This document shows, in pieces, positions 5,802 to 56,314 of a stretch of DNA of 64,000 nucleotides. The notes under the pieces were generated by a model. It was not told the origin of the DNA and did not search any database. It saw nothing but the letters and a program-made list of their open reading frames with translations. The first letter of the stretch is position 1. Each line of letters opens with the position of its first letter. The DNA lies in IMG/VR virus record IMGVR_UViG_3300009703_004110, positions 1-64,000 of that record; one strand, 5' to 3'. A program made the position numbers and the translations under genes.

Positions 5802-6749
5802 TTATACGTCGAAGTCGATTTCTCCACCAGTATAAGCTATCTCTCCCTGCCACTCAAATGGCCCAAGACTTAATGCGCTGTATTGACCGGCATATTGAGA
5901 GATGCCTGGATACTGAGACGGCCAGTCAATGCCGGCGACAATCTCTTCCAGAGACTCTTTGTGCTTGGCCGTTAGACCGGGGTTCTCTTGCTTCCCACCT
6001 GATGGCTCCGCAACTACTGAGCCAGGAACAGGCTTAGCATTGGTGTCCAACTTAAAGGCAAACTGATAGTTCTTAGCCTGACCTTCAGTTACTTCGTATG
6101 GTAAGCCGAAGCCTTCCGCATTATCATAAAACGGAGACTGCTCGCCAAGCGCTATATATCTCTTATAGAAGTCTTGCTGCTCTCTTGCTGGGTCAGCTGC
6201 TGCAACTACAGTTTTTTTTTCAGCCGATTTGAGAAGTTCATCTATAGTGAGCATGGCTTCAGCCACCGGAGAGCTTCCAGGCTCGCCAGAGAGTCCCTCT
6301 ACACCCCAAGCTGTATATGGCTTAGGCTCCTCTCCTCTCATTTCAGAATAGACGTCTCCACCCAAGTGTAACTGCTGAAGACTTTGTACAATCGGTTCTA
6401 ATTGAGCCAACTGAGCCTTTTCTTCTGGTCCGCCCCATCCCTCATCGATCATATCCTTAAGAGCCTGAACACCCGCCAAAAGATCTTTAACCTTTTCAGT
6501 CGCTTCTGCCTCTAGGTCTCCGCCGCTTTCGCCAGCTAACGGCTCTTCGCCCGGAAGCCCCTCTTCAAGAGGCTCCTCTCCGAATGCTTCTACGGCTGCT
6601 TCGTCCATGCTATCAAAAGGCGTCTGTGAGGCTGTATCGTCCCACTCATCTAGCGCCTTCTTAGCTAACCGATCTGCTATATCCGCTTCTTTGGTAAGTC
6701 CTGCGGCATCCAGATCGTTAGCCAACTTTAATAATTTAACGTGAATCAT
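5802..6749 (-). CDS. Acidic protein with the shared N-terminal leader; putative virion protein
   Basis: KLLKLANDLDAAGLTKEADIADRLAKKA leader; GGAG RBS. Confidence 0.75.
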   Translation of the reverse strand: MIHVKLLKLANDLDAAGLTKEADIADRLAKKALDEWDDTASQTPFDSMDEAAVEAFGEEPLEEGLPGEEPLAGESGGDLEAEATEKVKDLLAGVQALKDMIDEGWGGPEEKAQLAQLEPIVQSLQQLHLGGDVYSEMRGEEPKPYTAWGVEGLSGEPGSSPVAEAMLTIDELLKSAEKKTVVAAADPAREQQDFYKRYIALGEQSPFYDNAEGFGLPYEVTEGQAKNYQFAFKLDTNAKPVPGSVVAEPSGGKQENPGLTAKHKESLEEIVAGIDWPSQYPGISQYAGQYSALSLGPFEWQGEIAYTGGEIDFDV

Positions 6750-7693: not shown

Positions 7694-10567
7694 TTACTCC
7701 TCTTCTTCATTGTAAACCCAGGTCTCTTCGGGCAGGTAGATTGTTTCCGATGGATCTTCATCTTCATCACTTGGTAGGAATTCGGATGGAGTTATCCCCT
7801 TCGGATGTCTATTTGAAGGATCAAAGTATACTGGTGTATCACCTCTGTATCCCAGGTTTCCACTGTGAACATCTGTATTATCGGAGATTAACTGAAATAT
7901 CATTGATCGAACAATATCTGGCAACCAGCCCTTGGGAAGAGAAAGTCTTCTTTCTGCTTCTTTAAATACAGGCATAACTTCACCGTATAGACTTGAGCCA
8001 ATAAACTCGCCCACTAAGCCGTTAGTAAAAGTTTCTATATCTTTCATATCAGAATCAGGACCTGGTTTATTAGGTGCCCTCTGGAATGCACCACTGACAA
8101 CAACCTCATTTTGAGAATTTCTTTTGCCACCAAAATATACATTTAGCTTTCCAAAGGCTTTCTTAAATTCTCTCAATAATGACTTAGTTATATTAGACTC
8201 TTCTTTGTCTTCTATGTTCAGATATTTAGCCAAGTCTTTTAGCTGGTCATCATAAGATTTAACCATACTTCTGATTGGATTTAATTTCTCGATTACAACC
8301 CACGACATATTTCTTAGCTTCTTAACATCATATGGCTTCTTAGCTAATGGCACATCGAATATGCCATAGTCGAAAACCATTAGATTGTACTTGCTTCCCT
8401 TCTCTGGATCATGAACAGCTGCCGCCTGTTCTTTGTAATAGTCTAGGTCTTTATCATTAGACATAAGCTTAATCACACGATCATCTTCTGTAGTCCAAGC
8501 ATCGGCATAGCTACCAGATCCAAGAAAGTTTGTAGGCTTGTATCGTTCTAAGACGTCGGCGTTTCTGTTTAAGAAGTCCTTTACCCAGATCTCTTTACTT
8601 TCCCTGCTCTTCTCACCCTTAAACGAAGAAAACATTTCGCCTACTAAATTACCTATCACGGTTTCAGCGGAAAATATCTTACCGTACTCGCCAAACTCTC
8701 CCACTCTTTGTGGAAGTAAGTGCTCTAATCCGTATTGCTTGGCAAGCTCGGGAGTTAATATAGTCTCATCATAAGCGAAGTTTTCTCTGGCTCCATAATC
8801 TAGGTTTCTTCTGATTGGGCCAAGGGCGCTAGATAGAATAGTTTTAAGTCTATTTAGCTTCGCAGTCTTATCCCAGTCTCTAATTTCTGTATATTCTTCT
8901 GGTGCCTCATAAGCTGGAGACGGATTGTATGCATCAAAGAAGACCGGTGTAGTTCCGCGATAGCCCATGTTTTCTGGCTTAGTATCTCGGTGACCTCTAG
9001 TTAGAGACTTGAAGTTAGAAATCATAAAATCTTCAATCCATGATTTTTCTAGGCCATAGTGCTCTATGCCAGCGACTCTTAGTCTTTCTACTGAAAAATA
9101 CTGCTTGCGTCTCGAAGGCCTCTTCATCCATCTTTCGAAATGATGATTAATTCTCTTATCAACTAAGAATTTCGCAATATCTTCGTCAGATGTACTTCTC
9201 GGGATCTCGTCAGAGCCAGAAAGTATTTTGCTCATTGCTCTGGCAAAATCTGATACATAGCCAAGAAGATGATCAAGCGTAGGCTTACCTTGATAGGGAC
9301 TAAATCCAGGCTCTAAGAACTTCCTTGGTGTCTTAAGCTCTTCTGTAACTACCCATCCAAGATCAAAATGCTCTTTCATGTTTTCTTTAATTTCGCGCCC
9401 ATCTAAGCTTAATGGAAGATCTGGCATCCTAAATGGACCAGAATCATAAACTCTAAGGTCTCTCTTATCTCCAGTCTCAGGGTCAAAGGGCACGTCCTCA
9501 AGTCTTTTATATTCTTCCAAGGCTCCGAGCCCACCAAAGATCTTAAAGACTCGTCCATCCTCTAGCTTATAAGCGTGACCATGGGCTCCTGCACCAATGC
9601 TTTCTACTGGCATATACTCTGTAAATATGTCTGAATTAATATCTATGAACCTTTCGATAAAGGCTGCCGGGTTAGTATAGTTTTGTGACAGTTTTAACAA
9701 TGGCTCGGACTGCTCGATTAAATCAAATTGTGGCATTTCACCAAATAAATCATCAGCGTCATTTTGGCCAGGACTAAACGGATCAAAAAATACGGGAGTC
9801 TCGTTTCGATATCCGAGATTCTTAGAACCCAGGGTATCTACTCGTCCTTGTAACATAGAGTACAATAAAGCAATAATGTAGTTCTTTACAGTCTTCGAGC
9901 CCTCTGGAGAATCGTAGCCTTCCGGCTGGACTTCTTCTAATGGATAGAAGGCAATGAATCCTTGGTAAATTATATCTGCTGCTTTAGCCAGATTATCGGA
10001 AGTTATTTCCTTGATAGAGTCTGGATCAAAATTATAAGTGATATAATCATAGATGTTTCGATAGAATTCATCTTCACCAATCCCACCTTGATTCGGTAAG
10101 TATTCCGTTAGAGCCCATCCTAAGAAATCCACTCCTTTTTGCTCTGGAAGCTCGAATTTACCAAAGTCATAAATCTGAATGGTAGATTGTGTAGCGGCTC
10201 CCTGATAAAGCTTGTCAGTTTCTTCCTGATAGAAGCTCATTAGTTTTGGCTCATTAAAGAGCTTCAAGACCCTGCTGTCATCAGTGAGGTAAGCTTCGCC
10301 ATCCGCACCACCTCCAAGTCGTTTAACTGGGGTATGGATAGAGAAGATGGCAGAGTTCAGATCTAGAAATTTTCCAACCCATTGTTCTGCGATATTTTCA
10401 TCCATACCCTGAAGCATACTACCGAATAAGGGCGAATTCTGCACGAGATCAAGTCCAGGCATAATGCCCGAAGATAACTTATATAATGAAACAAGCTCCT
10501 CATCAAGGGACTCTTCTGTTAAGAGCTTTCCAAGATTATATAGTTTATTTGCTATCCTCGTCTTCAC
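7694..10567 (-). CDS. Protein with three tandem protein-kinase-like domains
   Basis: Three sets of G-loop + VxK (LGGGADG/VLK, IGAGAHG/VFK, LGSGSYA/VIK), catalytic loops (VDTLGSKN, HRDTKPEN, TDVHSGN) and (F/Y)FD. Confidence 0.85.
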   Translation of the reverse strand: MKTRIANKLYNLGKLLTEESLDEELVSLYKLSSGIMPGLDLVQNSPLFGSMLQGMDENIAEQWVGKFLDLNSAIFSIHTPVKRLGGGADGEAYLTDDSRVLKLFNEPKLMSFYQEETDKLYQGAATQSTIQIYDFGKFELPEQKGVDFLGWALTEYLPNQGGIGEDEFYRNIYDYITYNFDPDSIKEITSDNLAKAADIIYQGFIAFYPLEEVQPEGYDSPEGSKTVKNYIIALLYSMLQGRVDTLGSKNLGYRNETPVFFDPFSPGQNDADDLFGEMPQFDLIEQSEPLLKLSQNYTNPAAFIERFIDINSDIFTEYMPVESIGAGAHGHAYKLEDGRVFKIFGGLGALEEYKRLEDVPFDPETGDKRDLRVYDSGPFRMPDLPLSLDGREIKENMKEHFDLGWVVTEELKTPRKFLEPGFSPYQGKPTLDHLLGYVSDFARAMSKILSGSDEIPRSTSDEDIAKFLVDKRINHHFERWMKRPSRRKQYFSVERLRVAGIEHYGLEKSWIEDFMISNFKSLTRGHRDTKPENMGYRGTTPVFFDAYNPSPAYEAPEEYTEIRDWDKTAKLNRLKTILSSALGPIRRNLDYGARENFAYDETILTPELAKQYGLEHLLPQRVGEFGEYGKIFSAETVIGNLVGEMFSSFKGEKSRESKEIWVKDFLNRNADVLERYKPTNFLGSGSYADAWTTEDDRVIKLMSNDKDLDYYKEQAAAVHDPEKGSKYNLMVFDYGIFDVPLAKKPYDVKKLRNMSWVVIEKLNPIRSMVKSYDDQLKDLAKYLNIEDKEESNITKSLLREFKKAFGKLNVYFGGKRNSQNEVVVSGAFQRAPNKPGPDSDMKDIETFTNGLVGEFIGSSLYGEVMPVFKEAERRLSLPKGWLPDIVRSMIFQLISDNTDVHSGNLGYRGDTPVYFDPSNRHPKGITPSEFLPSDEDEDPSETIYLPEETWVYNEEEE

Positions 10568-10836
10568 CTACCTGCTCTCCAGTGTCTTTTGTACCAACGT
10601 TCCATAACTATTATCGCATCTTCAATCTCAGACTCTTGCTCTTTTACTTTTTTCATGATAATCAAGACAGATTCGACTTCCTTAATTATTCGCAAGATTT
10701 GTTTGCACCGCTCCCTTTTACCCGGTATAGCCATAATGTGCGCCCACCGCGTATCCAGATTGCGCGCATAACGCATTGCGTCTGCTCGGTTTATCGGGTA
10801 TTTTATCTGATGAAGGTTCTTCATGTTGCTGGTCAC
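10564..10836 (-). CDS. Hypothetical protein
   Basis: 90-aa ORF with GTGA overlap to the kinase gene; start uncertain. Confidence 0.55.
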   Translation of the reverse strand: MTSNMKNLHQIKYPINRADAMRYARNLDTRWAHIMAIPGKRERCKQILRIIKEVESVLIIMKKVKEQESEIEDAIIVMERWYKRHWRAGR

Positions 10837-19449: not shown

Positions 19450-19854
19450 TTATTTTAATACTTCTTGCTTTCCAAAAGCAATGCATTCGAAAAAGTCTAA
19501 AGAAGTTAGATCATCCTGTATAGTAACTTCGATCTTATCTGTTGTACCTGGAAATAGAACTACCGGAAAGGTTAATTGATATACTGCCATAAAATAATCA
19601 ACATTGGCACTTATAGCGCCTACGTCAGAAATAATTGATGTATTGATTCTGACTCCACCCCCGCTTTGTCCTGCGTAATTATAAAAATCGCCCAGAACCG
19701 TCATAGGATCAACAAATAAGTTTACAATTTCAGAATTAATAAACTGAAATTTAATTCCATTTGTAAGCGGAGTATTATTAGATGTGGCGGTACCAAACCT
19801 TCTACTATCCGCACTAAATATATTTAGATTATTACTATGAATAATAAATCTCAT
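19450..19854 (-). CDS. Hypothetical, probably structural protein
   Basis: Beta-rich composition; ATGA-coupled to the upstream fibre-like gene. Confidence 0.6.
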   Translation of the reverse strand: MRFIIHSNNLNIFSADSRRFGTATSNNTPLTNGIKFQFINSEIVNLFVDPMTVLGDFYNYAGQSGGGVRINTSIISDVGAISANVDYFMAVYQLTFPVVLFPGTTDKIEVTIQDDLTSLDFFECIAFGKQEVLK

Positions 19855-20492
19855 TTCATTATTGGGCCGGTAACAACCTCTGGTTCATCAGGGATCGGGG
19901 CGTCAGCTATTTCCGCTAGTAAGGCTATGATCCTATCTAATTGCACACCAACATCAGATGCATTATCTTTTGCGGTCTCAAGTATGACGTCTAAATCTTC
20001 AAGCTGATTGTCAACTCCTATTAACTGCCCCTCAATCTTTTCATTTGAAACAGAATAATTAGTAGGTGAGTAATCGATAAATAAGTTACCTCCTATTATT
20101 TCATCTGAACCACCAGCAATATGAGTAGAGGCATGTACTTTTGGCATTCTGGTTTTAGAAGTGTCATCTAATGTCGCATCAGAAATAATATCATTAAGTT
20201 CAGATAAAGTTGCTAGACCAAGATCTTTAAAATTAAGATTTTCTATTCTAAGCCTTAAACCCTCTAGTTCTTGGTCTAATTTATTTAACTCATCATTAAA
20301 GTCATCTAGCCTAGCCCTTACTGTAAAAAAACTACTCGAAGACGGAAGGACTCCTAGTTCTGCTTCTATATTTGCAATAGCTGAACGAAGAGTGTTAACA
20401 CTAAAAGCATTAATTTCAGTTGACCCATCTACTGCAATGGGCAACTGAGCGTAGCCATCGATCGCGTTAGGATATATACTGAAATCTGACAT
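19851..20492 (-). CDS. Tail-fibre-like protein with shared N-terminal anchor domain
   Basis: YPNAIDGYAQLP...LRSAIANIEAELG paralogous to 23233-24477; HASTHIAGGSDEI fibre motif. Confidence 0.65.
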   Translation of the reverse strand: MSDFSIYPNAIDGYAQLPIAVDGSTEINAFSVNTLRSAIANIEAELGVLPSSSSFFTVRARLDDFNDELNKLDQELEGLRLRIENLNFKDLGLATLSELNDIISDATLDDTSKTRMPKVHASTHIAGGSDEIIGGNLFIDYSPTNYSVSNEKIEGQLIGVDNQLEDLDVILETAKDNASDVGVQLDRIIALLAEIADAPIPDEPEVVTGPIMK

Positions 20493-22540: not shown

Positions 22541-23233
22541 TTATGCTAGTATGAATCCAGGAACTGCATAAGGCGTCAGCTGTTCCGTCAGAATGTCCAC
22601 CCTATTGAGATGTCTGTAACCTGCGACCGCTAGAACATTGGCACCAGCGGCGGCAGTATCACCCTCCTGCTTTGAAAAAAAAAGATCATTGGTTCCGACC
22701 ACATCTGAGCCAGGATCGCTGGAGCAAACCCAGATAGCATCTCCGTTATCAGTGCCTCTTGTGGCTACTACACTAGCTCCAGACGCACCTTGAGCTGCCA
22801 ACATATCATATGGCCTAGTCCAAGCTCCTGACTTAACCTGATAAACTCCATTATCTTTACTGTCGGTTTGCGCAGTTAAAAGAACTCTAAATCCGGCAGT
22901 TGCTGTAGTTCCATCTATCGAAGTAGAGGTTCCAGACAAAGTTGCAATATTAACAGTTGCAACCAAATCTACTTTGTTTCGCCCACCTTGATCTAAAAAT
23001 TCTAGAAAAAAGGCTAGAGACTCTGCTTTTGTTACAGCACCATTACCTCTTCCAATTAGCAAAGAATTATCATCGATCAGACCATGCAGCGATAGTGAAC
23101 CTCTAATTTCTGCCATAGTGGCATAATCTGTTAAGGTAACAGTAGCACTAGCTGCTATCGGTATACCTAGATCTTCAATGTCGACCTGGCTTGCAAGCTG
23201 GTTAATTACCTGTAATGTATTTGGTAGAGCCAT
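22541..23233 (-). CDS. Tail-fibre-associated protein
   Basis: RVLLTAQTDSKDNGVY..W.R..D motif common in phage fibre proteins; start at MALPN. Confidence 0.7.
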   Translation of the reverse strand: MALPNTLQVINQLASQVDIEDLGIPIAASATVTLTDYATMAEIRGSLSLHGLIDDNSLLIGRGNGAVTKAESLAFFLEFLDQGGRNKVDLVATVNIATLSGTSTSIDGTTATAGFRVLLTAQTDSKDNGVYQVKSGAWTRPYDMLAAQGASGASVVATRGTDNGDAIWVCSSDPGSDVVGTNDLFFSKQEGDTAAAGANVLAVAGYRHLNRVDILTEQLTPYAVPGFILA

Positions 23234-24477
23234 TATCTCCTCCACTTATAGTATATCTTACCCATAGTACCTGTTGTGGAATCATCAGTCGAAGCACTGT
23301 TTATCCCTACTGATAGAATATCATTAGCATTAAAGTCACTATTGGTGGCAAAAACAGTACTTGTTGCGGCAGTGGTCAGCGTAGTTTCAACTAGTACAGT
23401 TCCGCCTTTGAAAACAGTATATCTAATACTGCTAGGAAGAGACGCTGGTGCATCTCTAGTTAATGTAATATGAACAACAGTACCGTCACGTATAGCTACT
23501 TCGCCTATAGTTGAGGACATAGCCTTGCCATCTATTCCTCTAAAGAATCCGCCTTTAGCAACTGTATTATTTCTTCCAAATGGGATGGAATATGTGGCTA
23601 CAGATAGCCACTTACTTTTTGCATTATCATAATACATCTCTTCCATAATAGTGGTGTCAAAGTAAGTATCACCATTTGATGCGGCAGGATATGGAGAAGT
23701 AGGTGCTGCAGTTTGCCCACCATAATTTCTTCGTCCTGTCATGGCAAAAGTTCCGCCATTTAGGAAGAAGGATTTGTCATTTGTTGCTAAGTTGGCAGTT
23801 ATACTGTCACTAAATGTAGATGTACCTGTAACACTGATAGTAGAGTCAAAGGTAGCAGCCGCTGTAGAAGTGAAAGATGTACCAACTGTGGCTCCACCAT
23901 TAAACGTTGCAAGGCCACCCACTGTTAATGCTCCACTGGCAGTGATATCAACGAATGTAACGGCGCCAAGGATGCTTAATGCTCCAGTAATGGTTGTGGT
24001 AGATAAGGTGGAAGCCCCACGTACAATTAGGTCCGACTTTAAAGTGGTCGTACTATCTACTTCAAGCTCCTCTTCTATTCTTAAGTTTTTAACTATAGAT
24101 GGATTACCTTGAGCAACAATACCTCCCTGTACAATAATATTGTCAGGAAAGGTTGTCTTACCGTTGTTATCAACTATAATATTTGTTCCGGTAACTAGCT
24201 TTCCAGATGTATCTGTTGCTTTAATTAAACCATTAGCCATTGGAGATGTTATTTTTTGGACATCTTCTTCGACTGCGTTTAATAAGCTATCTAGCTCATC
24301 AAGCCTATCTTTAACGCTGCCAAATTCTCCACGAGGTGTGGTCCCAAGCTCACTTTCTATATTAACAATGGCTGAACGCATGGCATTTATATTGCCCGCG
24401 TCGATAGTAGTGACGCCATCGACAATCAATGGCAACTGAGAATATCCATCTATTGCATTGGGATAAAGACTATCCAT
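23233..24477 (-). CDS. Tail fibre protein
   Basis: Shared N-terminal anchor domain, T/G/V-rich beta-repeat shaft, NGDTYFDT motif. Confidence 0.7.
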   Translation of the reverse strand: MDSLYPNAIDGYSQLPLIVDGVTTIDAGNINAMRSAIVNIESELGTTPRGEFGSVKDRLDELDSLLNAVEEDVQKITSPMANGLIKATDTSGKLVTGTNIIVDNNGKTTFPDNIIVQGGIVAQGNPSIVKNLRIEEELEVDSTTTLKSDLIVRGASTLSTTTITGALSILGAVTFVDITASGALTVGGLATFNGGATVGTSFTSTAAATFDSTISVTGTSTFSDSITANLATNDKSFFLNGGTFAMTGRRNYGGQTAAPTSPYPAASNGDTYFDTTIMEEMYYDNAKSKWLSVATYSIPFGRNNTVAKGGFFRGIDGKAMSSTIGEVAIRDGTVVHITLTRDAPASLPSSIRYTVFKGGTVLVETTLTTAATSTVFATNSDFNANDILSVGINSASTDDSTTGTMGKIYYKWRR

Positions 24478-25866: not shown

Positions 25867-26044
25867 TATTTAACCTCGTTCGTAAAGAAATTAATTGCGT
25901 TATTATGGTATCTAGATGTTCTTTCTTCAAAGTTACAGATATTAAATAACTTTCTTTACCTTGCTTTGTTTTAATACCCATTCGGATGGCATTGCCATCT
26001 TTTTCGATAATCATATAACTATCTGAATTAAGTGTTATTTTCAT
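25850..26044 (-). CDS. Hypothetical protein
   Basis: Start at MKITLN, ATGA-coupled to the lysozyme stop. Confidence 0.6.
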   Translation of the reverse strand: MKITLNSDSYMIIEKDGNAIRMGIKTKQGKESYLISVTLKKEHLDTIITQLISLRTRLNNVEED

Positions 26045-26712
26045 CCGGTCCCGCCCTTCCACATTGCCGCCTCTGCGGCTCTCCTTTTTTGGTGACCAGG
26101 AGAAGAAACAAATGCCACTGGTATTAGATTTCCAGCACCAGTTAAATCGCCTGAATTAATTAACTTCAGAAGTTTTGACCTGGAGATTGTTCCAACTCCA
26201 GTGTTGTATATTATACTAACTAATGCATTAACTTGATTGGTATTTAATGGCGTTGTCACATTTCTCTTAATAAAGCCGAGAACTTTATCCATGTCTTTAG
26301 TCAGATACTGATCGGCCTGTGATTTGGTAATTCTCATTGGACTAGTTTGCCCAACTTTACCGTGCCTATGACCATATCCAATTGCCCACCAACCACCATC
26401 ATCATATGATTCCAATCGAAGGCCTTCAAATTTCTTAATCATATTAGCGCCCTCCTGATCATAAGCGGCTTCCGCATTAGGATCTGGAACTTCTATTATT
26501 TGGCCGATCTGTAATTTAGTCCAATCAAGATCAGGGTTTGCATTCTCAATCATTCTTTGATAAACTGGATTACCACCAGAGATACTCCAGGCCGTATCTC
26601 CCGATTTGATTGTATATGTTTTTGCTGTTTTCAAAAAAGAAAAGAGAAGACGGGCCTCTTTATGAAGCCCCTCTTCTCTTAAATATTGGTATAAACCTTC
26701 TAGCTTTTTCAT
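26041..26712 (-). CDS. Leader + LysM + GH24 lysozyme
   Basis: YTIKSGDT...LQIGQIIEVP (LysM); IKKFEG...YDD...IGYGH and RRAAE (GH24). Confidence 0.92.
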   Translation of the reverse strand: MKKLEGLYQYLREEGLHKEARLLFSFLKTAKTYTIKSGDTAWSISGGNPVYQRMIENANPDLDWTKLQIGQIIEVPDPNAEAAYDQEGANMIKKFEGLRLESYDDGGWWAIGYGHRHGKVGQTSPMRITKSQADQYLTKDMDKVLGFIKRNVTTPLNTNQVNALVSIIYNTGVGTISRSKLLKLINSGDLTGAGNLIPVAFVSSPGHQKRRAAEAAMWKGGTG

Positions 26713-26746: not shown

Positions 26747-29125
26747 TTACATCACTTTTGCAGCAAAAGTTGCTAACTTACTCCTTTCTCCCCTAACTAG
26801 GGTTATATGCCCAGAGCCTTCAAATTCTTTAAATTTGTCAACTACGACGCCCAAGCCAGATGTTTTTATGTTTAATTTATCAGAATCTATCTGGTCCAAA
26901 TCTCCAAGTAATACAATCTTTGAGTTATTGCCCATTCTTGTAATTAAAGCTTTGGCTTCTTTCATATTGATATTCTGAGATTCATCAATAATAAAATAAG
27001 TATTAGGAAGCGTTCGTCCCCTAATATAAGATAATGCTTCGATTTCAATCTGACCTTTCTCGAACATCAGATTGATATAACCACCGCCATGTTTTCCTAA
27101 TAGAACTTTAATATTGTCCATCACAGGCTGTAACCAAGGCAACATCTTTTCTTCTTTGGTTCCAGGCAAAAAGCCGATCTCCTTAGAAGTACTTTCTGCG
27201 GGACGAGATATGATTATCTTTTCATAAGTACCAGCTTGAAGCTCCTGCAAACCTGCAGCAATAGCAAGCAAAGTATTATGTGTTACAATATAATCATCTG
27301 TAATATACAGATGATCTTTGCTGTCGATCATGATGCATTGAGTCTCTTTCTTTGAAAGCTTATCGATTTTATCAATATATTTTCTAAGATTAACAGAACT
27401 CGTTGGACGCCACCTATTAGCCTTTCTTGATAATAAAAATGGACAAAATTCTTTAGAAAGTGAAATGGTTACTCTAAAAGACTCTTTACCTATTTTGGTT
27501 CTTCCTTTGTATTTATAAGTAGTAAATCTACTATTTACAGTTGCTTTGCCACCTAACGAACGAACAATTTCTGCCAAGTCATTTGCAAGCTTGGCAGATG
27601 TACTAGTAAATGTTGATTTTAAACCAGATTTGGTCACTGTGCCGTCTGTATCCATCAAGCCTCTGATTATAGACAATCTATCTCCTACGGATGATAGCTT
27701 ATAATCCTTTGGAATAAACTTATCTTCAGAACCTAAGCCCTGTAATTTAAGCTCAGATAAAAACTCTTTTAGTGGATTTGCAAAATTATTTCTTTTGTTT
27801 CCATCTTTAGTAATCCTATAATCATATTTCGAACCATTTATTTTTGAAATCTTACACCCAATTGACGGTAAGTAATCTGCAAAAAAATCTAAAATTTCAT
27901 TATCTGCCGATGATAAACATGGTGAACCAGATTTTATATATCCGTCTCCAAGTAAACATCCTAATATATATGGATCAATTTTTAACTCTTTAAAATCAAA
28001 CTCTATAGGAGATACAATTGGAATTGAGTGATTTCTTTTTCCATTTTTATTTCTCAAGGATTTTGAAATCTCTTCTAAAGATTTAACTTCACCTTTTCTA
28101 TTATAATCACGATCTCTCTGAGTTCTTGTTAGCCATAAATGTTCTATACATGACTCTGCAGATGTACCATCAGAAAATGTTATCTTATAGACATCCTTTT
28201 TTCCCTGCGGAAATACCCCAATAACATTAGCCATAGATCCGTCCGGTGTTAATACTTTACTTCCAAGCTTAATATCGCCCATTTTAACCCAACCATCTGG
28301 TGTTAAAATTCTCGAATAAAGAGGCTGCGCTTTTCCGCACCCCGCCATGCCAGTTAAGGTCACCATTGAAATACCGGGATCTAATAGCAATTCTAAAGCA
28401 AGAGTTTGCTCTTTATTTCTCGGTCTAATACCCTGAACTTTAAACTTTTTAGTAGAGCCGGCATAATGTAGCTTTCTCCAAATGCCATCTGTCCAGACCC
28501 TTGCTAGAGCGCTTTGCTGCCCTGACTTTAAAATTAAGAATTCATTTGAATAGTAGACGTCATCTAGATCAAATTCTTTCGGATCTATTTCTCCTTCTGC
28601 ATAAAAAGTATCTATAATTGACTCTTCAACCGCTAAGGTATGGACTCCGGTGAACTCACCTTCTTCTCTTTGCGCGATTAAATCTGATATACAGCAACAA
28701 TCAATCTTAAGCGCATCACACTTAACTCGTAAAGCAATATCCTCACTGACCAAGGTTACATTATCAAATACAGCCTTTGACTGCTTGGCTACTGCAATAA
28801 TTCTATTATCGACTATATCCTTCATATTTGGCGGAAGGACTGATAAATCTGATGTTGATATAACAAAGATTCTTGAATTATTTTGGGTAATGACACCCTT
28901 AAAAATACTTCCAGTCTTTCTTAGCGCATCAAGCCTTCTATTTACCTGCCTCGCTGAGGCGCCAGTGACATCTCTATATGTTTTAAGTTTGTCAAGCTCC
29001 TCCAAGACTTCTAGTGGAATATAGATGTCGTGGTCTTGTATGACATCTGTTAGTTCTGGAAACGCTATAAGTGATGAGGTATCAACTACTAAAATAGCCC
29101 TTCCTAATGCTGAGCTTTTACTCAT
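26747..29125 (-). CDS. phoH: PIN-PhoH (PhoH2/YlaK-type) protein, intein-containing
   Basis: PIN VVDTS/VLEELD/DNRI; Walker A GMAGCGK|T; IGFLPG, IRGRT, IIDESQN, TRMG. Confidence 0.93.
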   Translation of the reverse strand: MSKSSALGRAILVVDTSSLIAFPELTDVIQDHDIYIPLEVLEELDKLKTYRDVTGASARQVNRRLDALRKTGSIFKGVITQNNSRIFVISTSDLSVLPPNMKDIVDNRIIAVAKQSKAVFDNVTLVSEDIALRVKCDALKIDCCCISDLIAQREEGEFTGVHTLAVEESIIDTFYAEGEIDPKEFDLDDVYYSNEFLILKSGQQSALARVWTDGIWRKLHYAGSTKKFKVQGIRPRNKEQTLALELLLDPGISMVTLTGMAGCGKAQPLYSRILTPDGWVKMGDIKLGSKVLTPDGSMANVIGVFPQGKKDVYKITFSDGTSAESCIEHLWLTRTQRDRDYNRKGEVKSLEEISKSLRNKNGKRNHSIPIVSPIEFDFKELKIDPYILGCLLGDGYIKSGSPCLSSADNEILDFFADYLPSIGCKISKINGSKYDYRITKDGNKRNNFANPLKEFLSELKLQGLGSEDKFIPKDYKLSSVGDRLSIIRGLMDTDGTVTKSGLKSTFTSTSAKLANDLAEIVRSLGGKATVNSRFTTYKYKGRTKIGKESFRVTISLSKEFCPFLLSRKANRWRPTSSVNLRKYIDKIDKLSKKETQCIMIDSKDHLYITDDYIVTHNTLLAIAAGLQELQAGTYEKIIISRPAESTSKEIGFLPGTKEEKMLPWLQPVMDNIKVLLGKHGGGYINLMFEKGQIEIEALSYIRGRTLPNTYFIIDESQNINMKEAKALITRMGNNSKIVLLGDLDQIDSDKLNIKTSGLGVVVDKFKEFEGSGHITLVRGERSKLATFAAKVM
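27275..28330 (-). mobile_element. Class 3 intein (Ala1) with LAGLIDADG endonuclease, in PhoH Walker A
   Basis: AQPLYS...HLW...GLMDTDG...TQCI...VTHN|T; 352 aa. Confidence 0.9.
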
Positions 29126-32500: not shown

Positions 32501-32675
32501 TTTGGCAAGTTTGCCAAAATTCTTCGGTTCTCCCGGACTCTTCATCAATTACTCTAGCGTAAGTTCGCTTATAAGTAACATATCCGAGCGGGCCCCACTT
32601 CGGTTGCTGGTCTATAAAGTTCGACATGAACTTGGTAGACAGCTTAAACGGGTTCGCTGGAAAAGACAGCATCAT
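29511..32675 (-). CDS. nrdJ: Class II (AdoCbl-dependent, monomeric RTPR-type) ribonucleotide reductase, intein-containing
   Basis: PPGRGLW, ALNNC, GNVRR, GANP|C.E, VKPSGT, C-terminal CDGATC. Confidence 0.93.
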   Translation of the reverse strand: MMLSFPANPFKLSTKFMSNFIDQQPKWGPLGYVTYKRTYARVIDEESGRTEEFWQTCQRVVEGVYNIQRSHCERLRLPWNAHKSQRSAQEMFTRMWEFKFLPPGRGLWMMGVPQIWKMGSAALNNCAFTSTKDISSDFASPFTFLMDMSMLGVGVGGDVKGAGLVTIKTPKMAQAEWVIPDTREGWVESVRVLLDAFVGRGSIPVFNYSKIRPYGAPIRGFGGTASGAGPLRNLHENIISVLVPNDTKITPTTVMSETERPEPLSFSIEIQEFTPYEINSTQIVDIFNYVGKCVVAGNVRRIAEIMFGSPEDKEFRSLKLNKEALEDRRWASNNSIFAEIGIDYSKFADMIKVNGEPGFMWLHNARAYGRMMEPPNWKDRRAEGANPCITGDTLIFTEEGPVRADEMLDKPFIAIVNGKKYNCKTGVFETGTKPVYLVKTKEGHSIKVTEDHKILTAPKITRKKRYELWVEAGDLDAGDKLILNDTRYNENNLISWEGDGSFNEGWLLGGLLGDGYFHKEQKSGILQYWGSTKNDMLNLAIERTKTLGGDPRYHSNRNGCNIDSKDMVSIKSRQLWEKAIDYGIDHEKNIINESTLLCTSSKFQAGFLRGFFDADGSVQGTQTKGLSVRIGLANEQHLLIIQKMLLNFGVNSTVYRNRREAGKRLLPDGKSGYKLYECNAMHELVISNDNLSHFLLQINFDEMERNDKLRLRMNDYRRTLNRERFVAEVESVTYIGIEKVYDCTIDEVHRFGANGIIVHNCSEQTLESFELCCLVETFPVNHESLEDYLATLKYAYLYAKTVTLLPTHDPRTNAVMMRNRRIGCSQSGIQNNIAKVGYRAHMEWCDSGYDRIRGLDKKYSDWLCVPRSIKMTSVKPSGTVSLLPGVSPGVHFDHSEYYIRRIRIQKDSPIIPACIEAGHQVNPCPYQPDSMVVDFPIYIENFVKSKYDASMWEQLELVAQMQRYWADNQVSATITFNETEAKQISTALSMYETRLKSISFLPLNDHGYKLAPYETISREEYLKLSSNLKDIDLSFSVHEKEDKFCDGATCTIEF
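30396..31514 (-). mobile_element. Intein with LAGLIDADG endonuclease, directly before the RNR catalytic Cys
   Basis: NP|CITGDT...GFFDADG...IIVHN|CSEQ; 373 aa. Confidence 0.93.
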
Positions 32676-35205: not shown

Positions 35206-35704
35206 CTAGCTCCTCATCAAATAGGTCAAGGAAGTCCTTGGTTGACATATTTCTTGTCTCATCTAAAAATGTATCAAAATCTGCACCGCCACGTATCTTG
35301 GTACCACTATATATAATCCTATCTAAAGATTTTGGTACTGGTACGCCATTAGAGTTGGGACTTAATGACGTGTATTGCATCTTCTTATTAAAGACATCCA
35401 TGTGGTAGATCAATTCATTACGAATATAATCTGGGCACTCATCAAAAACCTCTTCAAATGGTATAGTGACATATCTTATCGACGCTCTTGCACTATTTCT
35501 CAAAGCTTTTCTGCCAACAGCGGTAGATTTATCTACCTTATGAGGCCCAGGCGCCCTTCCAACGACCTTTTTCTTCCATATAGCTCCATCTCTTCTGATG
35601 GTTACAATGAAACCTGTATGCTTTAAGGTGAATTCTCCTCTTTCCAGAGAGATTGGAGTTAATAGCCCTGTTTTAAAAGCCTTTTTAACTGCCTCAGACA
35701 TCAT
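35195..35704 (-). CDS. Hypothetical protein with FEEV..LxYHMD motif
   Basis: IPFEEVFDECPDYIRNELIYHMDVF; lies between yeaH-like and spoVR. Confidence 0.7.
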   Translation of the reverse strand: MMSEAVKKAFKTGLLTPISLERGEFTLKHTGFIVTIRRDGAIWKKKVVGRAPGPHKVDKSTAVGRKALRNSARASIRYVTIPFEEVFDECPDYIRNELIYHMDVFNKKMQYTSLSPNSNGVPVPKSLDRIIYSGTKIRGGADFDTFLDETRNMSTKDFLDLFDEELDDE

Positions 35705-44114: not shown

Positions 44115-45523
44115 ATGTTTGGACAACTTGATGCCCTATATTCTATATTGATAATCGAAGGCTTATATTCTGAAGCTTTAGATCTTTTATGCTTAGTCAA
44201 GGAAGCAGGAAGTTCAAAGATAATAAGTGATTATGAAGAAGGCGAAAGTATGGGGCGTAGTGGAGAAGGTCGTCAAAGTATGTCTCCGGAAAAAAGAGAG
44301 TTTCTTTGGGACCTAATAGAAGCTATTTTAACACATCTTGGAAAATCTCTCGATACAGTTAATGGTACTGACTTTGTTCCTTCTGGCCTTAAAGCTACTA
44401 GATATACTGCCATAGCAATAGACTTACTTCGTAACCCTGATATTAAAGCAGTCGCTGATCAATATAATTTTAATATGAATATAAAAATCATGTACATAAT
44501 GAAGGCTATTAGTTTTATTGCAATGGACATTGTTAAAAAAATGTATTTGAAAAATCCATCTATACCGCTTAAAGAGGCCAAAGAGAGACTTGCAGAGCGC
44601 GGATTTTTATACAGCACAATTACAGCTGTTCGTTTTCTTAAACTCGCGCCCGATTATCAAAATATATATTTGGTAGAACGTGACTTTGAAGATGCTTCAG
44701 AATCATTCTTACTTAGATATGCAGAGAAGCTTGCTGAGCAAGACCCAGAAGCTCCCGTAACAGCAAAAGAATAATTGATAGCTTTATTACTGAATTTCCA
44801 GAGCAACCAATAGATCCTGCAAATGCAATTCGTGCAGCAATTGTATATAAAAATAAGGCGAGTCAAAACTATGAGCCAATGATTTTATCGATTATTATGG
44901 AATCTCTAATTGGCGGCGATGGAAAAATAACTGCCGACAAACTAATGGAGCAATTTTATAAAAAGTATCCTAATGCCATTAAGAGACCAAAGACCTGGTT
45001 CAATGCATTTTTATCCGATCTTAAAAAACATTTTAAAACCTTTATTGCCGATATTATTATGCAGTTAATAGAAGAGGGCGTTTCAACTACCTCTATATCT
45101 TTATATTTATCTACCGCTTTAAACTATAATATTACACAAGCAAATGTTAGTCAAATATCTAAAAAGTTACTATCTGGTACGCCTCTTCATAAAAAGCCTC
45201 CAAAAACTGAGTTGCAAGATACAGTTAATTTTGAAAAAAGAAGAACCATGGAAGATGTGGATGCAAAACGAAATATTCTAAATCAAAGATTAAATAACTT
45301 ATACAATAATATGATTAATGAATATCAATCACCAACTACAAACCAGCCTAAAGACTTTGTTGAGATCTGGATAAAACGATATCAATATTACATTAATGAA
45401 GCAATAACTAATGTTGGATTACTTCCAGAACAAGCTGATGATTTGGTTTTAGAAATCATTGACAAAATTCGTGCTAAATTGCAAGCTATTGAATCGGCTC
45501 ATAGCCAATCTCAGGATGTTTAA
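44115..45523 (+). pseudogene. Leader-bearing protein split by an apparent -1 frameshift (ORFs 44115-44774 and 44879-45523)
   Basis: The second ORF's frame is open from 44738; adding one A at GCAAAAGA joins the two ORFs. Confidence 0.6.
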
Positions 45524-52156: not shown

Positions 52157-55100
52157 TTATAGCGTTATACCAAGCATATTATTGTCAACAATAACAGATA
52201 ATCTATATATCCTTTCTGAGCGAGATATTTTTGCCTTTTTCTTTTTGATTTTAATTTTTTGCTTGAATTTTGGTGTAGTTAAATCTATACTACTGCGCGG
52301 AGACCAATCTGTTCGGCCTTGATATTTATATTCATATACAAAATCTCGTGGATCGCATCTGAGACTTTTTTTCTTAAATCTGTCTGGATCCAACTTGGTA
52401 AATCTCTTTCCACAGAGCACATATTTTGCTCTAAGTTTCGATTCTACGTGGGTCGCCCAAGCCGCATACATGTCGTCCATAGAATACCCAATGTGATATT
52501 CTGCGCCTCGTCCATATAAAGATGCCTCAACATTATCTAAAATATATCCATGATCTGATTGTACATAATGAAAATAACTTTGAGAGGCTATTTTCCAGCC
52601 AACTTCGGTATTGATCTCTAAGATTAACACTCCAGCTAGCGGATTCACATAAGAATCGATAGCCGCATTTTTGCCGACACCATTAATATGCTGGCAACAA
52701 CTTGTTTCTAGACCAATACTGAAGTGCAATGAATCATAAGTTCTAAGGGTTCTAAATCTAAATTTCTGTCCAATGGGCGCCCAATCAATCTTGTGAATAT
52801 CTGGCGATTTAATTTCTGTTTCTTCGTTATACTCAGAATACTCTCCAAACTCCTGAACACTCTTGAGGTCTGATAGGGCCGTTTCAATGAACCGCTTGTT
52901 TTCTTCAAAGTCTGGTTGCCCTGGCACTAACTTTGGTGGATTATTGCACAAAGTTATTAGCTTCTTAACTCTAGCGCCAAAACCTCTCTTAATATATCCC
53001 TGTTCTACCATAATTTTAGCCACAGGATATATTGTTTCCATTATTTTTCTATATCCACCAAGCCTCTTTAGTTGAGCACATGCTTCAAAGTATCGTCCGA
53101 CCAAGTGAATCTTTCCCCAGTTTTTAAAGTTCTGGCTCTTGAGCATATTTGCAAAGAAAGACTTTGGAAGACCTTCACCGCGATTATGGACAAAAGCGGC
53201 CATTCTAATAGCGGCACTTATCTTCTTTTTAAAGTTTCCCGGCACGCTTATTAGCGTATCTGGGAAATAAGTTTTAACCTCTTCGTACCCTATATTTCCT
53301 TCTGCGGCTCTCCAAGTTTGGTCCAAAACATTTCCCATTTCGATAAAATTATTATAGCTTGTAATACCAAGTACTTTGGCAGTTACTAATTTTGCATAGA
53401 ACATCGGAGGCATATCTCTAGGTTTTTTAGAGACCTCCCTATAAAACTCACTAACATCATCAATTGGATAAAGCTCGGTCATATCTGAAATTTTAGACGG
53501 ATACTCCATTTCTTTTGCCTTACCTTTTATCATTTCTTTGGCCCATACACTTATAGGGATGCCTTCGAGCCACGGCTTACCTTCGAGCGCTTTAAACTTT
53601 TTGAGGATTGTTCTTGGACCTACCGCTTTAAAAATCTGCCCTCTTTTTTTAGCTAATAACCTGTAGTTAACTTCTGCATGCATGAGTCTAAGCTCTTGGG
53701 CCAGATTTGGCAACGAATTTTTAATAAATGTTAGTTCTTTATTAAATCGAATGTTTCGTTCTATTTCTTGTCTAACTTTACCTAATATCTCATTAGTTCT
53801 TCGTTTTTTATCTTCTTCTCCGAAGGCGTACTCTAACTCTTTGTCTATAACGGCTTGAATGCTTTCATCAGGATATTGCTCAGGTAGTAATTCAAGTTCC
53901 GATGTTGTCTTAATAAGCCCTTCTAAATCTTCGCCTCTAAAAGGCTGTCTTGAGAAATAATCTTTATTAAAAATACTAGTCCCTCTATTTTCATTTCTTT
54001 TATTTATAATATTGACTAAGGAGCTTTTTATATTTTTATGGATCTTTTCTAAATGTCTCGGCTTATCATATCTTCTTACATTTCTAAATCCAGATGCCAT
54101 CCATCTATCAAAATCTTTTATCTCATTATTGAATCTGTTATAGCGAGTTTCTTCTTCTTCATTTATATTTCCATCTAAAAAGTCAGAAATTAACCTTTCT
54201 TTAGAAAAATAATTGTGACTGACTAAATTTGTAACACTGGAATATCTCTCTTCTAGTGCAGTAACCTGATTCATTTCTTCTTTGGAATCTCTATATGGAA
54301 GTTCTCTAACTGAGGCAAAGACCATTTTCTTTTTTAAAACAGTAATTAATCTTGGTTTTAAAAACTTCTTCTTACTCAGAATATGCGTGGTGATATCTGC
54401 GATGTCTCTGCTTTTTATAGTTATATATCCTCTTTTGATTAACTTTTCTAATTCAATATTGAAATTATCATCTAAAGAACTTAATGATCCGGTAATTGTA
54501 TCTACAATTTTTTCTCCAAGAATTTGTGAGCTAGTAGACATCATATCGCCCGAAAGAGTTTTATCTTTAAACAAGAATTTTGGATAATTAAGTGCTGATA
54601 TATACAAAATTCTATTTTCTGGATCAAACTTAGTCCAATTAGATACTAGTGACTTTGCAACTTCAGGAGATATGTTAGACCCCCTTAGGTCCTCTACACT
54701 ATATCCCGTTGCTTCTCTGATAACTTCATCTATTATAATTTTTGAAGCTTGATCTCTAGCAGGTTGAAGAATTCTCTTAGTAACATCACTAACCACACTA
54801 TTAAATATATCAGATATTAAATATGCAAAGTTTTCAATAATGGAGATCTGAGTATGTTTGCCATGTAAAATAGATATCAGATTAAATTTCTTTAAATTTT
54901 CTTCGTCTGATCTTCTGTAACTATCAGTTTTATAAAATCCTGACTGATTATGATAATAAGAATAACCTGTTGCTATATCCTTTTCTTTTTCAATTTCACT
55001 GGCAAATAAAAGATATTTTTCATGTATTTCATCTTGCATATGCTTTATCACGCTATTTGCTATACGCGCTCTAGCTCCGCTTTTACTTTTCAGTACTTTG

Positions 55101-56314
55101 TTAAGTTTCTTTTTAAATCCCTTTAGAAATCTCTGGCCTCTCTTGACCGATGCTAACGTTCTATCTAAAGAATCGTCATAACTGTCCAAGTTATTATATT
55201 TTCTTGAAAACCAATAAGATATAGTAGATTTTTGTGAAATAGAGTAGCTATACACATTAACTGCGACTTCATTTTTAAAGCTCGGAGCCTCTTCCAGATA
55301 TTCTTTCATAAGCGCTGGATTATCAAACCAACCTTCCTCTAGATTGTCAAAAAATCCTTTAAGGCCCAGTCTGCTCCAGTCGTCCCCTCGGCCTGTTGAA
55401 GCGCCAAAGATAGATATGCCAACAGAATCTATAACAATCTTGTATATTTGGTGGTAAAGTCTATTAGATAAATCTTCGACCATTTCATCATAGCCTTTAA
55501 AGTTCATGCTTTCTGGTGGCAGTGGCTCAGATGCTGCTTGTGAAATCTTAATATCATCTAGAATGGTAATTATTTGCGTTCTTTTTTGTGATATAGAGAG
55601 GTACTTAGAGTAAAGCTCTCCAACCATCTTCCTATATTCTTCTCTATCAATATTATAATCGACTTGAATATTTTCTGGCTTTAATTTCTGGCGATATCGA
55701 TAATTACCTTCTTCAACGTAATCATATCCGGGAATATTCATCTTTTCGTAATTACTTGGATTACGCCCTTTCTCTGCAATAAATTCCTCTAGTTTCTCAC
55801 GATATAGTTTTCTTTTTTCGGTCCATTCATCCTCCAAGGCAGCTCTTTCTTCTTCTAACCGTCTAGGATCTGGAAGTATACGAATCTCGGGCGGCATATC
55901 GGGAATTGAAGTCTGTGCCTGCTCCAAGTTATATGAGGGAATTTGTGCTTTTAACTCTGGATATCTATCTCTATATTCTTTTATTGTAACCAAGAATTCT
56001 GTATGATCAGCAGGAATTGACATAACTTCTTGCGCCAACTCTTCTTTACTTCTATCTGGGTGACTTCTCATTAAAACCTGAAGAAGCCTATTCCTCATTT
56101 TTCTCTGATCTTCCGGAATATAAACTTCTTGACTAGTAGGCCGAGGGCCTGCCTCACTCATTTCCGGCACGACCTCTGGCCGACCTTCTTCCGTTTCTTC
56201 ACGCACTTCTTCAAACAACTGAAGCTGCTCTTGAGCAAGCTTAAGAAGATAATTATATTCTGAATAAAAACCATTAGTTTTTAGATATTCTGCAAGTCTG
56301 CGAATATCGGTCAT
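52157..56314 (-). CDS. 1385-aa leader-bearing protein; putative internal virion protein
   Basis: MTDIRRLAEYLKTNGFYSEYNYLLKLAQ leader; C-terminal domain IGLETSCCQH...YILDNVE. Confidence 0.75.
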   Translation of the reverse strand: MTDIRRLAEYLKTNGFYSEYNYLLKLAQEQLQLFEEVREETEEGRPEVVPEMSEAGPRPTSQEVYIPEDQRKMRNRLLQVLMRSHPDRSKEELAQEVMSIPADHTEFLVTIKEYRDRYPELKAQIPSYNLEQAQTSIPDMPPEIRILPDPRRLEEERAALEDEWTEKRKLYREKLEEFIAEKGRNPSNYEKMNIPGYDYVEEGNYRYRQKLKPENIQVDYNIDREEYRKMVGELYSKYLSISQKRTQIITILDDIKISQAASEPLPPESMNFKGYDEMVEDLSNRLYHQIYKIVIDSVGISIFGASTGRGDDWSRLGLKGFFDNLEEGWFDNPALMKEYLEEAPSFKNEVAVNVYSYSISQKSTISYWFSRKYNNLDSYDDSLDRTLASVKRGQRFLKGFKKKLNKVLKSKSGARARIANSVIKHMQDEIHEKYLLFASEIEKEKDIATGYSYYHNQSGFYKTDSYRRSDEENLKKFNLISILHGKHTQISIIENFAYLISDIFNSVVSDVTKRILQPARDQASKIIIDEVIREATGYSVEDLRGSNISPEVAKSLVSNWTKFDPENRILYISALNYPKFLFKDKTLSGDMMSTSSQILGEKIVDTITGSLSSLDDNFNIELEKLIKRGYITIKSRDIADITTHILSKKKFLKPRLITVLKKKMVFASVRELPYRDSKEEMNQVTALEERYSSVTNLVSHNYFSKERLISDFLDGNINEEEETRYNRFNNEIKDFDRWMASGFRNVRRYDKPRHLEKIHKNIKSSLVNIINKRNENRGTSIFNKDYFSRQPFRGEDLEGLIKTTSELELLPEQYPDESIQAVIDKELEYAFGEEDKKRRTNEILGKVRQEIERNIRFNKELTFIKNSLPNLAQELRLMHAEVNYRLLAKKRGQIFKAVGPRTILKKFKALEGKPWLEGIPISVWAKEMIKGKAKEMEYPSKISDMTELYPIDDVSEFYREVSKKPRDMPPMFYAKLVTAKVLGITSYNNFIEMGNVLDQTWRAAEGNIGYEEVKTYFPDTLISVPGNFKKKISAAIRMAAFVHNRGEGLPKSFFANMLKSQNFKNWGKIHLVGRYFEACAQLKRLGGYRKIMETIYPVAKIMVEQGYIKRGFGARVKKLITLCNNPPKLVPGQPDFEENKRFIETALSDLKSVQEFGEYSEYNEETEIKSPDIHKIDWAPIGQKFRFRTLRTYDSLHFSIGLETSCCQHINGVGKNAAIDSYVNPLAGVLILEINTEVGWKIASQSYFHYVQSDHGYILDNVEASLYGRGAEYHIGYSMDDMYAAWATHVESKLRAKYVLCGKRFTKLDPDRFKKKSLRCDPRDFVYEYKYQGRTDWSPRSSIDLTTPKFKQKIKIKKKKAKISRSERIYRLSVIVDNNMLGITL

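Follow-up and report, generated by a model that had tools for sequence, protein, structure and literature searches.

The kinase of phage T7 (gp0.7, hereafter T7K) is a proven and highly promiscuous Ser/Thr/Tyr kinase with anti-defence function, which disarms many bacterial defence systems by pervasive phosphorylation (PMC13645617). It is an early protein that is not found in the virion, it bears D-P-V where the DFG motif would stand, and distant homologs of it, with roles unknown, were noted earlier in jumbophages of about 400 kb (PMC13645617). A second described group, Kinase-PolyVal (PF18762), consists of the protein-kinase core minus its C-terminal subdomain, with the active site kept, and occurs in multidomain phage proteins which are presumably injected (PMC5512222). 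Here, a stretch of 64,000 nucleotides of a virus genome (positions 1 to 64,000 of IMG/VR record IMGVR_UViG_3300009703_004110, referred to as the window) was analyzed with regard to one open reading frame (ORF), which encodes a 957-aa protein with three tandem kinase-like units (P0001). This protein is best described as a T7K-like phage kinase and as such of a previously known kind; the family to which it belongs is uncatalogued. Overall, we lean towards the reading that all three heads of the array work as T7K-like protein kinases, with proteins as their targets in the course of infection. The gene is composed of the following parts, given in window coordinates.

7694..10567, minus strand: whole ORF of P0001 with leader, three kinase units and acidic tail, 957 aa
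10469..10567, minus strand: N-terminal leader, aa 1-33 (KTRIANKLYNLGKLLTEESLDEELVSLYKLSS), supported by ortholog conservation, a leader hidden Markov model (HMM; 24-30 bits, best shuffle 7.8) and the structure model
9758..10402, minus strand: kinase unit 1, aa 56-270, with Gly loop 85-90, Lys102, V-D244-TLGSK-N250 and Asp262
9818..9841, minus strand: catalytic loop of unit 1, VDTLGSKN, aa 243-250
9692..9757, minus strand: linker 1-2, aa 271-292, containing G-x-MP-x-F-x-[LW]-I
8912..9691, minus strand: kinase unit 2, aa 293-552, with Gly loop 325-330, Lys342, H-R-D528-TKPE-N533 and Asp545
8969..8992, minus strand: catalytic loop of unit 2, HRDTKPEN, aa 526-533
8612..8911, minus strand: linker 2-3, aa 553-652, containing W-D-K-T-A and LTPELAKQYGLEHLLP
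7802..8611, minus strand: kinase unit 3, aa 653-922, with Gly loop 683-688, Lys700, T-D899-VHSG-N904 and Asp916
7856..7876, minus strand: catalytic loop of unit 3, TDVHSGN, aa 898-904
7694..7801, minus strand: acidic, disordered C-terminal tail, aa 923-957, and stop codon

The ORF starts with GTG, which overlaps the stop codon of an upstream 90-aa ORF (GTGA) and is preceded by GGAG at a distance of about 9 nt. Since the same 4-nt overlap is found in two related genomes (L001 and L006), in which the 90-aa ORF shows 40-50% identity, this start is credible. In the full-length model, the three domains are confident, in contrast to the linkers (268-278 and 561-604) and the tail (926-957). The predicted local distance difference test score (pLDDT) falls below 50 at residues 268-278 and 926-957, and the low-confidence stretch 561-604 of linker 2-3 bears one lone helix (565-589).

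An earlier note on this DNA had described three homologous units from their recurring motifs, and this was borne out by motif positions, blastp and the family HMM alike. Comparisons between the units by blastp gave E-values of 3e-18 (units 1 and 2), 2e-13 (1 and 3) and 6e-21 (2 and 3) at 25-26% identity, and the family HMM found three full-length domains with independent E-values of 1.6e-43 (56-270), 6.7e-46 (293-552) and 1.2e-57 (653-922). The threefold repeat is confirmed and lies far above chance. A helix with W/F-x3-F-[LI]-[DN]-x-N begins at aa 63, 303 and 661, the motif N-x-G-Y-R-x3-P-V-[FY]-F-D at aa 250, 533 and 904, and the Gly loop G-x-G-x-x-[GA] as well as V-x-K are present in all three units. 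The short motifs LYKLS (aa 28), LLKLS (aa 290) and DKTA (aa 566) are also where the note had placed them, the latter two having been taken as echoes of the leader end. LLKLS is not conserved in orthologs and its resemblance is probably due to chance. DKTA sits in a conserved W-D-K-x-A of linker 2-3 and lends loose support to such an echo; a general leader HMM finds no leader at this position nor elsewhere inside P0001.

The units are very probably kinase-fold domains with intact active sites. The 13 units of five orthologs retain, without exception, G-x-G and the Ala behind it, V-x-K, a Tyr of the helix that comes next, the strand Y-D-x-G-x-F, the Glu of the hinge, both catalytic residues (Asp and Asn), G-x-R and the last Asp. 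Even across 133 family domains of 15-30% identity, no exchange of the Lys or of the catalytic Asp is seen, and G-x-G-x-x-G, the hinge Glu, the Asn and the final Asp are each conserved in at least 90%. The Asp equivalent to that of DFG occurs as D-P. An AlphaFold2 model of unit 2, with the family alignment as input, reached a pLDDT of 87 and a predicted template modelling (TM) score of 0.86. It begins with two helices and three strands, on which the Gly loop and the Lys are located, followed by helix C, which is short, and two strands leading to the hinge Glu; then come five helices, the catalytic loop, a strand pair with the Asp and about ten more residues. When this model was compared with the PDB by Foldseek, 104 matches were obtained at E<=1e-3, and the best 50 consist exclusively of protein kinases and aminoglycoside phosphotransferases (APH). 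Alignment by VIA-align yielded Z-scores of about 8 to MPS1, CDPK, PINK1, CDK7 and CDK2; about 135 residues are aligned at 3.4-3.8 Å, and in the solved kinases they extend from strand 1 to just past DFG (CDK2: 1-153). Likewise, the top 30 matches among Swiss-Prot models are all Ser/Thr kinases, and the BFVD matches include annotated T7-type kinases and one jumbo-phage protein. In the ESM Atlas, the best named structural neighbour of the unit's own model is the PF27024 cluster (TM 0.49/0.55 over 171 residues). Without exception, the named neighbours in structure are kinase-like. The kinase fold proposed in the earlier note is supported by the catalytic-residue conservation, the model and its structural neighbours, and structure prediction, which had been suggested as a check, returned a kinase core for unit 2. 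The units are, however, not full Hanks-type (PF00069) domains: they lack the activation segment (APE) and helices alphaF-alphaI (subdomains VIII-XI) and end about ten residues after the DFG-equivalent Asp. PF00069 was matched neither by P0001 and its relatives nor in the precomputed annotations.

The relation to T7K was revealed by profile comparison. Aligned by hhalign, the family profile matches the gp0.7 family profile with a probability of 87% and an E-value of 4.1e-6; the match spans 140 columns and residues 69-215 of gp0.7, and each motif falls on its counterpart. Its score is 45.9, whereas 60 column shuffles reached at most 23.2 and the reversed profile 13.9. This comparison needed a gp0.7 family alignment, which was built from T7 gp0.7; gp0.7 as a single sequence matches the family profile weakly (19.7%), and the single unit clades against the gp0.7 profile are in register but weak (E 0.036, 0.0018 and 0.0015). 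The gp0.7 consensus 'FDMHSGNIMF...PYITDP' mirrors the 'DLHSGNLGYRG.TPVYFDP' of the array-kinase family. Moreover, unit 2 and a stand-alone unit-3 ortholog lie nearest, among the named clusters of the ESM Atlas, to the PF27024 Phage_T7_kinase cluster, and by language-model features the Kinase-PolyVal (PF18762) cluster is also near the stand-alone unit-3 ortholog. Judged from these profiles and the shuffle null, the units are remote homologs of T7 gp0.7, so that the comparison drawn in the earlier note reflects more than analogy.

The likeness to T7K concerns the whole kinase core, the motif order, the D-x-H-S-G-N seen in the loop of unit 3 and the D-P found instead of DFG. In addition, the core ends in both right after the Asp at the DFG position, and the distribution is phage-specific. 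Unit 3 is the unit closest to T7K and to the family consensus (DVHSGN...FDP). In contrast to T7K, the array-kinase units lack the C-terminal shut-off (SO)/DNA-binding domain, the alignment ending at gp0.7 residue 215, and the helical insert that separates their hinge from the catalytic loop is longer. Besides, P0001 comprises three tandem units and a leader, and it belongs to huge uncultured phages and not to Autographiviridae.

With Kinase-PolyVal, the units of P0001 share the loss of the C-terminal subdomain and the intact active site, and some array-kinase relatives are fused to ART-PolyVal. Nevertheless, polyvalent proteins combine disparate activities, whereas P0001 repeats kinase units only; in some relatives, ART-PolyVal (two cases), DUF5661 or PG_binding_1 is added to the kinase units. 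A deep family profile additionally matches the N-lobe of SteC (8jbi) with an E-value of 8e-4, including the helix before the Gly loop. SteC, OspG and NleH resemble the units in their depleted C-lobe and as effectors which are delivered into a target cell to rewire it, but they are single-domain type III effectors of bacteria acting on eukaryotic hosts, and SteC still has alphaF/alphaG as well as a DGD motif that is non-canonical. Chains with several kinase domains also occur in eukaryotes, in the tandem kinases (RSK/MSK, JAK, plant tandem kinase proteins). These represent unrelated lineages with usually two domains, one of them often a pseudokinase, whereas the array described here, from a virus of bacteria, has three minimal domains, and those of relatives up to five, all of which appear competent.

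Several results weigh against the assignment to T7K-like kinases. The TM-scores to solved kinases are low (0.2-0.3), and a Z-score of about 8 is a level at which, as VIA-align warns, a common arrangement may be reflected. As neither value is decisive alone, the case for the kinase fold rests on the agreement of fold, motif register and profile homology. The conserved Glu of alphaC is not evident in the units. P0001-P0005 and 70 relatives have no PF27024 match in the precomputed Pfam annotations, PHROG 2828/15752/18305 were not matched by P0001 or the relatives searched, and PF18762 was matched neither by P0001 at E<=10, nor by 113 relatives at E<=0.01, nor in the precomputed annotations. P0001 itself falls into no family of Pfam (E<=10), PHROGs or NCBIfam, and sequence searches of the PDB gave nothing useful. 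Finally, the array is known only from subsurface metagenome DNA.

The contig of P0001 has a length of 391 kb, and its four full-length relatives are located on metagenomic contigs of up to 403 kb. In DNA runs, the kinase-array gene was detected only in subsurface metagenomes. No relative was found in 50,697 deposited phage genomes by megablast and by tblastn with P0001, P0061 and P0016, and a search of IMG/VR gave only the window's own genome. An exhaustive profile search, based on the 13 ortholog units, revealed 598 cluster representatives at E<=1e-3 and 232 at E<=1e-10. Among these, 113 relatives matched no kinase family in Pfam or PHROGs, and the 70 members present in an annotated database are all unnamed and have no precomputed Pfam family. 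The family is represented in metagenomes only. Most family members are single-domain proteins of 270-450 aa, and arrays range from one to five units. The largest number was observed in P0006, a relative of 1840 aa (L005, 10001-15523) with five complete units followed by a PG_binding_1/muramidase-like C-terminus; this protein has no recognisable long leader and begins with MNIKNIKKQRINKILTIKKAEE.

In a maximum-likelihood tree, units 1, 2 and 3 form separate supported clades (94/91, 100/100 and 99/98, respectively). The stand-alone proteins P0007 and P0008 are nested within the unit-3 clade, and P0009 as well as a 308-aa gene of L001 adjoin the unit-1 clade. Because of these separate clades with stand-alone genes in or beside them, the array is seen to have arisen by the joining of old paralogs rather than by recent duplication, an origin that agrees with the units having distinct roles. 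The composition varies among relatives: P0004 contains units 2 and 3 only, P0005 units 1 and 3 with a decayed middle, and L001 has four units in three genes. By its sequence, linker 2-3 appears as a fusion scar of a leader/unit-3 junction, since its stretch LTPELAK..GLEHLLP corresponds to that following the leader in the stand-alone unit-3 orthologs P0007 and P0008; the evidence consists of pairwise similarity to these two N-termini. In P0002 and P0003, linker 1-2 is similar to the last part of the leader of the same protein. Relic leaders inside the arrays were considered, and the general leader HMM detects none in P0001-P0004; an apparent internal leader in a 408-aa ORF of L006 was set aside, as this ORF may be two genes called as one.

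Taken as a whole, P0001 would represent a multi-headed phage kinase with a helical-hairpin leader of 33 residues, three distinct minimal domains on flexible linkers and an acidic tail. Each domain is predicted to form a kinase core of N-lobe, hinge, helical bundle, D-x4-N loop and two strands, with the Mg-binding Asp in D-P. The domains are old paralogs which still exist as separate leader-tagged genes in related phages and were fused here. By analogy with T7K, each unit may use ATP to phosphorylate host or phage proteins on Ser/Thr (possibly also on Tyr), and this phosphorylation may serve host takeover or anti-defence, with substrate preferences presumably differing between the three units. 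The leader could act as a targeting signal. Its most likely purpose would be to have the protein packaged into the capsid, with the kinases entering the cell together with the DNA, and the protein might possibly be cut at the leader and the linkers.

The leader is not confined to the kinase gene. An N-terminal motif of about 30 residues, h..L...L...G[LMF]..E[A]..L..L.K.A, opens six ORFs of the window and recurs in related genomes.

7694..10567, minus strand: leader-tagged kinase array P0001
6760..7503, minus strand: leader-tagged protein resembling Fe/Mn superoxide dismutase (SOD), directly downstream of the kinase gene
5802..6749, minus strand: leader-tagged acidic protein of 315 aa without known domain
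26041..26712, minus strand: leader-tagged LysM and phage lysozyme protein
44115..44774, plus strand: leader-tagged 219-aa protein without known domain
52157..56314, minus strand: leader-tagged 1385-aa protein without known domain
L001 8129-15631 and L006 12661-16158: leader-tagged genes in related genomes

In the leader of P0001, the positions L9, Y10, L12, G13, L16, E24, L28 and K30 are invariant in orthologs, and the model shows a helix-turn-helix with helices 2-18 and 22-32. An HMM of ten leaders scored real cases with 22-42 bits, the best shuffle reaching 7.8, and its matches include cases outside the seed, in L006 and on kinase orthologs. An HMM built from the kinase orthologs alone missed the other tagged ORFs, which were recovered with the mixed seed. 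The leader tag that the earlier note had assigned to the protein is genuine, as it is common to six window ORFs, and it is present on many stand-alone members of the kinase family as well. On sequence grounds, it is a candidate targeting signal. Among the tagged proteins, the SOD-like one matches Sod_Fe_C with 2.9e-12 and remains well below the cut-off in NCBIfam. Its listed TTG start is probably too far upstream and the real start an internal ATG (MSENL...), because the leader begins at this internal Met. The 1385-aa protein gave no hint of its role.

What such a tag is for can be read in two ways. Delivery of the kinase array in the virion, as the earlier note had supposed, is a tentative proposal to which we give somewhat less than an even chance, the evidence being circumstantial. 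N-terminal propeptides that target proteins to the capsid have precedents in T4 and giant phages (PMC5694885), and injected polyvalent proteins that include kinases without C-lobe provide another (PMC5512222). As in the capsid-targeting sequences (CTS) of T4 and the propeptides of SPN3US and phiKZ, a short N-terminal tag is common to unrelated enzymes of one phage, and several leaders here end in [AS]-x-E, similar to the protease motif of phiKZ and SPN3US (PMC5694885). The known CTS peptides differ in that they show no sequence similarity to the leader, which is longer (about 30 aa, two helices). In relatives, the cluster of leader-tagged genes stands beside a muramidase. In L001, a PG_binding_1-muramidase gene abuts the kinase gene, and a homologous peptidoglycan (PG)-binding module is fused to the five-unit array of P0006. 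Given the shared leader, the fusions to PG-binding and ART-PolyVal domains and the precedents mentioned, packaging and ejection would be the most economical reading.

Alternatively, the array may be an intracellular kinase that is made after infection, never packaged and never cut, with the leader serving as a docking, oligomerisation or localisation module which might, for instance, gather several enzymes in one assembly or compartment; this is possible, though we hold it to be less likely than not. It would agree with T7K itself being an early, non-virion protein (PMC13645617) and with the location of the kinase gene, which sits among replication and nucleotide-metabolism genes and not among head genes, in conserved synteny and translationally coupled to a small conserved ORF. 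A phage-encoded TubZ/PhuZ-like tubulin makes intracellular organisation plausible, and the leader end of P0001 does not carry a [SAG]-x-E protease motif. The latter also weighs against packaging and processing, as do the gene location, the lack of an internal leader in the linkers of P0001 (general leader HMM) and the other leader-tagged proteins examined, which yielded no virion clue. On the other hand, the lysozyme of the window bears the leader, and related muralytic or PG-binding modules adjoin or are fused with kinase arrays. As such enzymes act outside the cytoplasm, ejection proteins fit better than an assembly within it, and the ART-PolyVal fusions of relatives likewise point to injected proteins.

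Cleavage into separate kinases is unlikely, the evidence for it, which includes the flexible linkers, being circumstantial. [SAG]-x-E motifs occur too frequently in the acidic linkers to be informative about cleavage, and G-x-MP-x-F-x-W of linker 1-2 was rejected as a cleavage signal; as G-x-MP-x-F-x-[LW]-I precedes the domain in many single-unit relatives, it is read as the beginning of the extension that precedes unit 2 on its N-terminal side. The most far-reaching version of the proposal, in which the leader would, in a clade of huge phages, load a set of ready-made enzymes (three to five kinases, muramidase, SOD-like protein and others) into the head and the array would be ejected with the DNA and cut at its linkers into kinases differing in specificity, which would phosphorylate defence and takeover targets of the host before phage gene expression, is speculative and on balance improbable. 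If true, it would be a virion-borne, time-zero version of the action of T7K, which itself follows early transcription.

Apart from their delivery, the substrates of the units have to be considered. They are probably protein kinases and not small-molecule kinases. The latter (APH, choline-kinase or Kdo-kinase type), acting on an antibiotic, lipid, sugar or nucleotide signal, are suggested by the D-x-H-x-G-N type of loop in units 1 and 3 and most of the family, which is typical of APH, choline kinase (ChoK) and Kdo kinases. Moreover, the longest Foldseek alignments are those to APH(2'') with about 260-280 columns, and Kdo and APH/ChoK clusters are among the Atlas neighbours. Nevertheless, T7K as the only characterised relative detectable by sequence has D-M-H-S-G-N and is a proven protein kinase. 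The best Z-scores are obtained with eukaryotic-type protein kinases, the alignments to APH have root mean square deviations of 14-15 Å, and the C-terminal helical substrate-binding subdomain of APH/ChoK is absent from the units. Besides, unit 2 has a loop of the Ser/Thr-kinase type, H-R-D-x-K-x-x-N. A role as small-molecule kinases is hence quite unlikely.

The catalytic loops, which the earlier note had ranked as canonical (HRDTKPEN), atypical-kinase-like (TDVHSGN) and possibly impaired (VDTLGSKN), have to be viewed differently within the family. The D-x-H-x-x-N loop occurs in 107 of the 133 domains and also in T7K, so that it is the norm and no mark of an atypical unit. D-x-K-x-x-N is found in eight domains, including all unit-2 orthologs. 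Judged from this distribution, HRDTKPEN is a derived minority state resembling Ser/Thr kinases and D-x-H the T7K-like ancestral state. The one additional residue between Asp and Asn in unit 1 was confirmed, without indication of an impairment. Such seven-residue loops occur four times among the 133 domains, including unit 1 of P0001 and of its divergent ortholog P0005, in both of which the His is replaced, and the extra residue recurs in P0009. As the longer loop is found again in so distant an ortholog as P0005, and there with both Asp and Asn, decay of the loop is unlikely. That one or more units (e.g., unit 1) are pseudokinase scaffolds or decoys beside a single active head, as in JAK or GCN2, could be argued from this loop, from the Ala at the third Gly-loop position of unit 3 and from the alphaC Glu, which was not found, but is hardly probable, as each ortholog unit has kept Lys, Asp, Asn and the Mg-binding Asp unchanged despite 25-45% identity, the unit 1 orthologs of P0002 and P0003 have standard-length loops, and stand-alone single-unit genes from each clade imply that each type functions alone.

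With about 600 cluster representatives in uncultured phages, the family defined here is a large sister family of T7K that is in no domain library, and its T7K-like kinases have been amplified and joined into arrays with as many as five different heads. The shared N-terminal tag links these kinases to muralytic and other enzymes. If it is a packaging signal, huge phages could use it to bring an anti-defence toolkit made beforehand into the cell, a route that would be open to test, and it might also be a handle for loading cargo into capsids. Additionally, three paralogous minimal cores in one chain provide a compact natural system for studying the minimum of the kinase fold that activity and specificity require.

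The kinase gene is part of a conserved neighbourhood. In four genomes, the order of topoisomerase, NUDIX, RNaseH-like gene (on the other strand), small ORF, kinase array and SOD-like gene is kept, the SOD-like gene being located downstream of the kinase gene in L001 and L006 as well. The small ORF and further features of the window are as follows.

10564..10836, minus strand: conserved basic 90-aa ORF upstream of the kinase gene, its stop overlapping the kinase start
33763-38861, minus strand: complete trio of PrkA (AAA_PrkA and PrkA), DUF444 (YeaH-like) and SpoVR-like
49003-50424, minus strand: tubulin/FtsZ-family protein with TubZ-like C-terminal domain (PhuZ/TubZ-type)
26747-29125, minus strand: PIN-PhoH gene with intein/LAGLIDADG insertion
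29511-32675, minus strand: B12-dependent ribonucleotide reductase gene with intein/LAGLIDADG insertion
45851-48349, minus strand: UvsW-like helicase gene with intein/LAGLIDADG insertion

The 90-aa ORF has no family match and could encode a chaperone or regulator of the kinase array. PrkA, DUF444 and SpoVR form a bacterial operon associated with stress and sporulation. An intein/LAGLIDADG insertion was also observed in the topoisomerase IA of L006. The first 2000 positions of the window have a GC content of 57.7%, compared with about 38% elsewhere, and contain overlapping ORFs on both strands with a sub-threshold match to MazG_C only; this region could be of foreign or mobile origin, or else mark a join in the assembly. 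Scans for promoters and terminators, tRNAs and Rfam families gave nothing informative. Finally, two ORFs on the minus strand (19851-20492 and 23233-24477) without Pfam match share the N-terminal motif YPNAIDGY.QLP..VDG.T.I.A...N.LR.AI.NIE.ELG, which we take to be typical of phage tail-fibre or tail-spike proteins.

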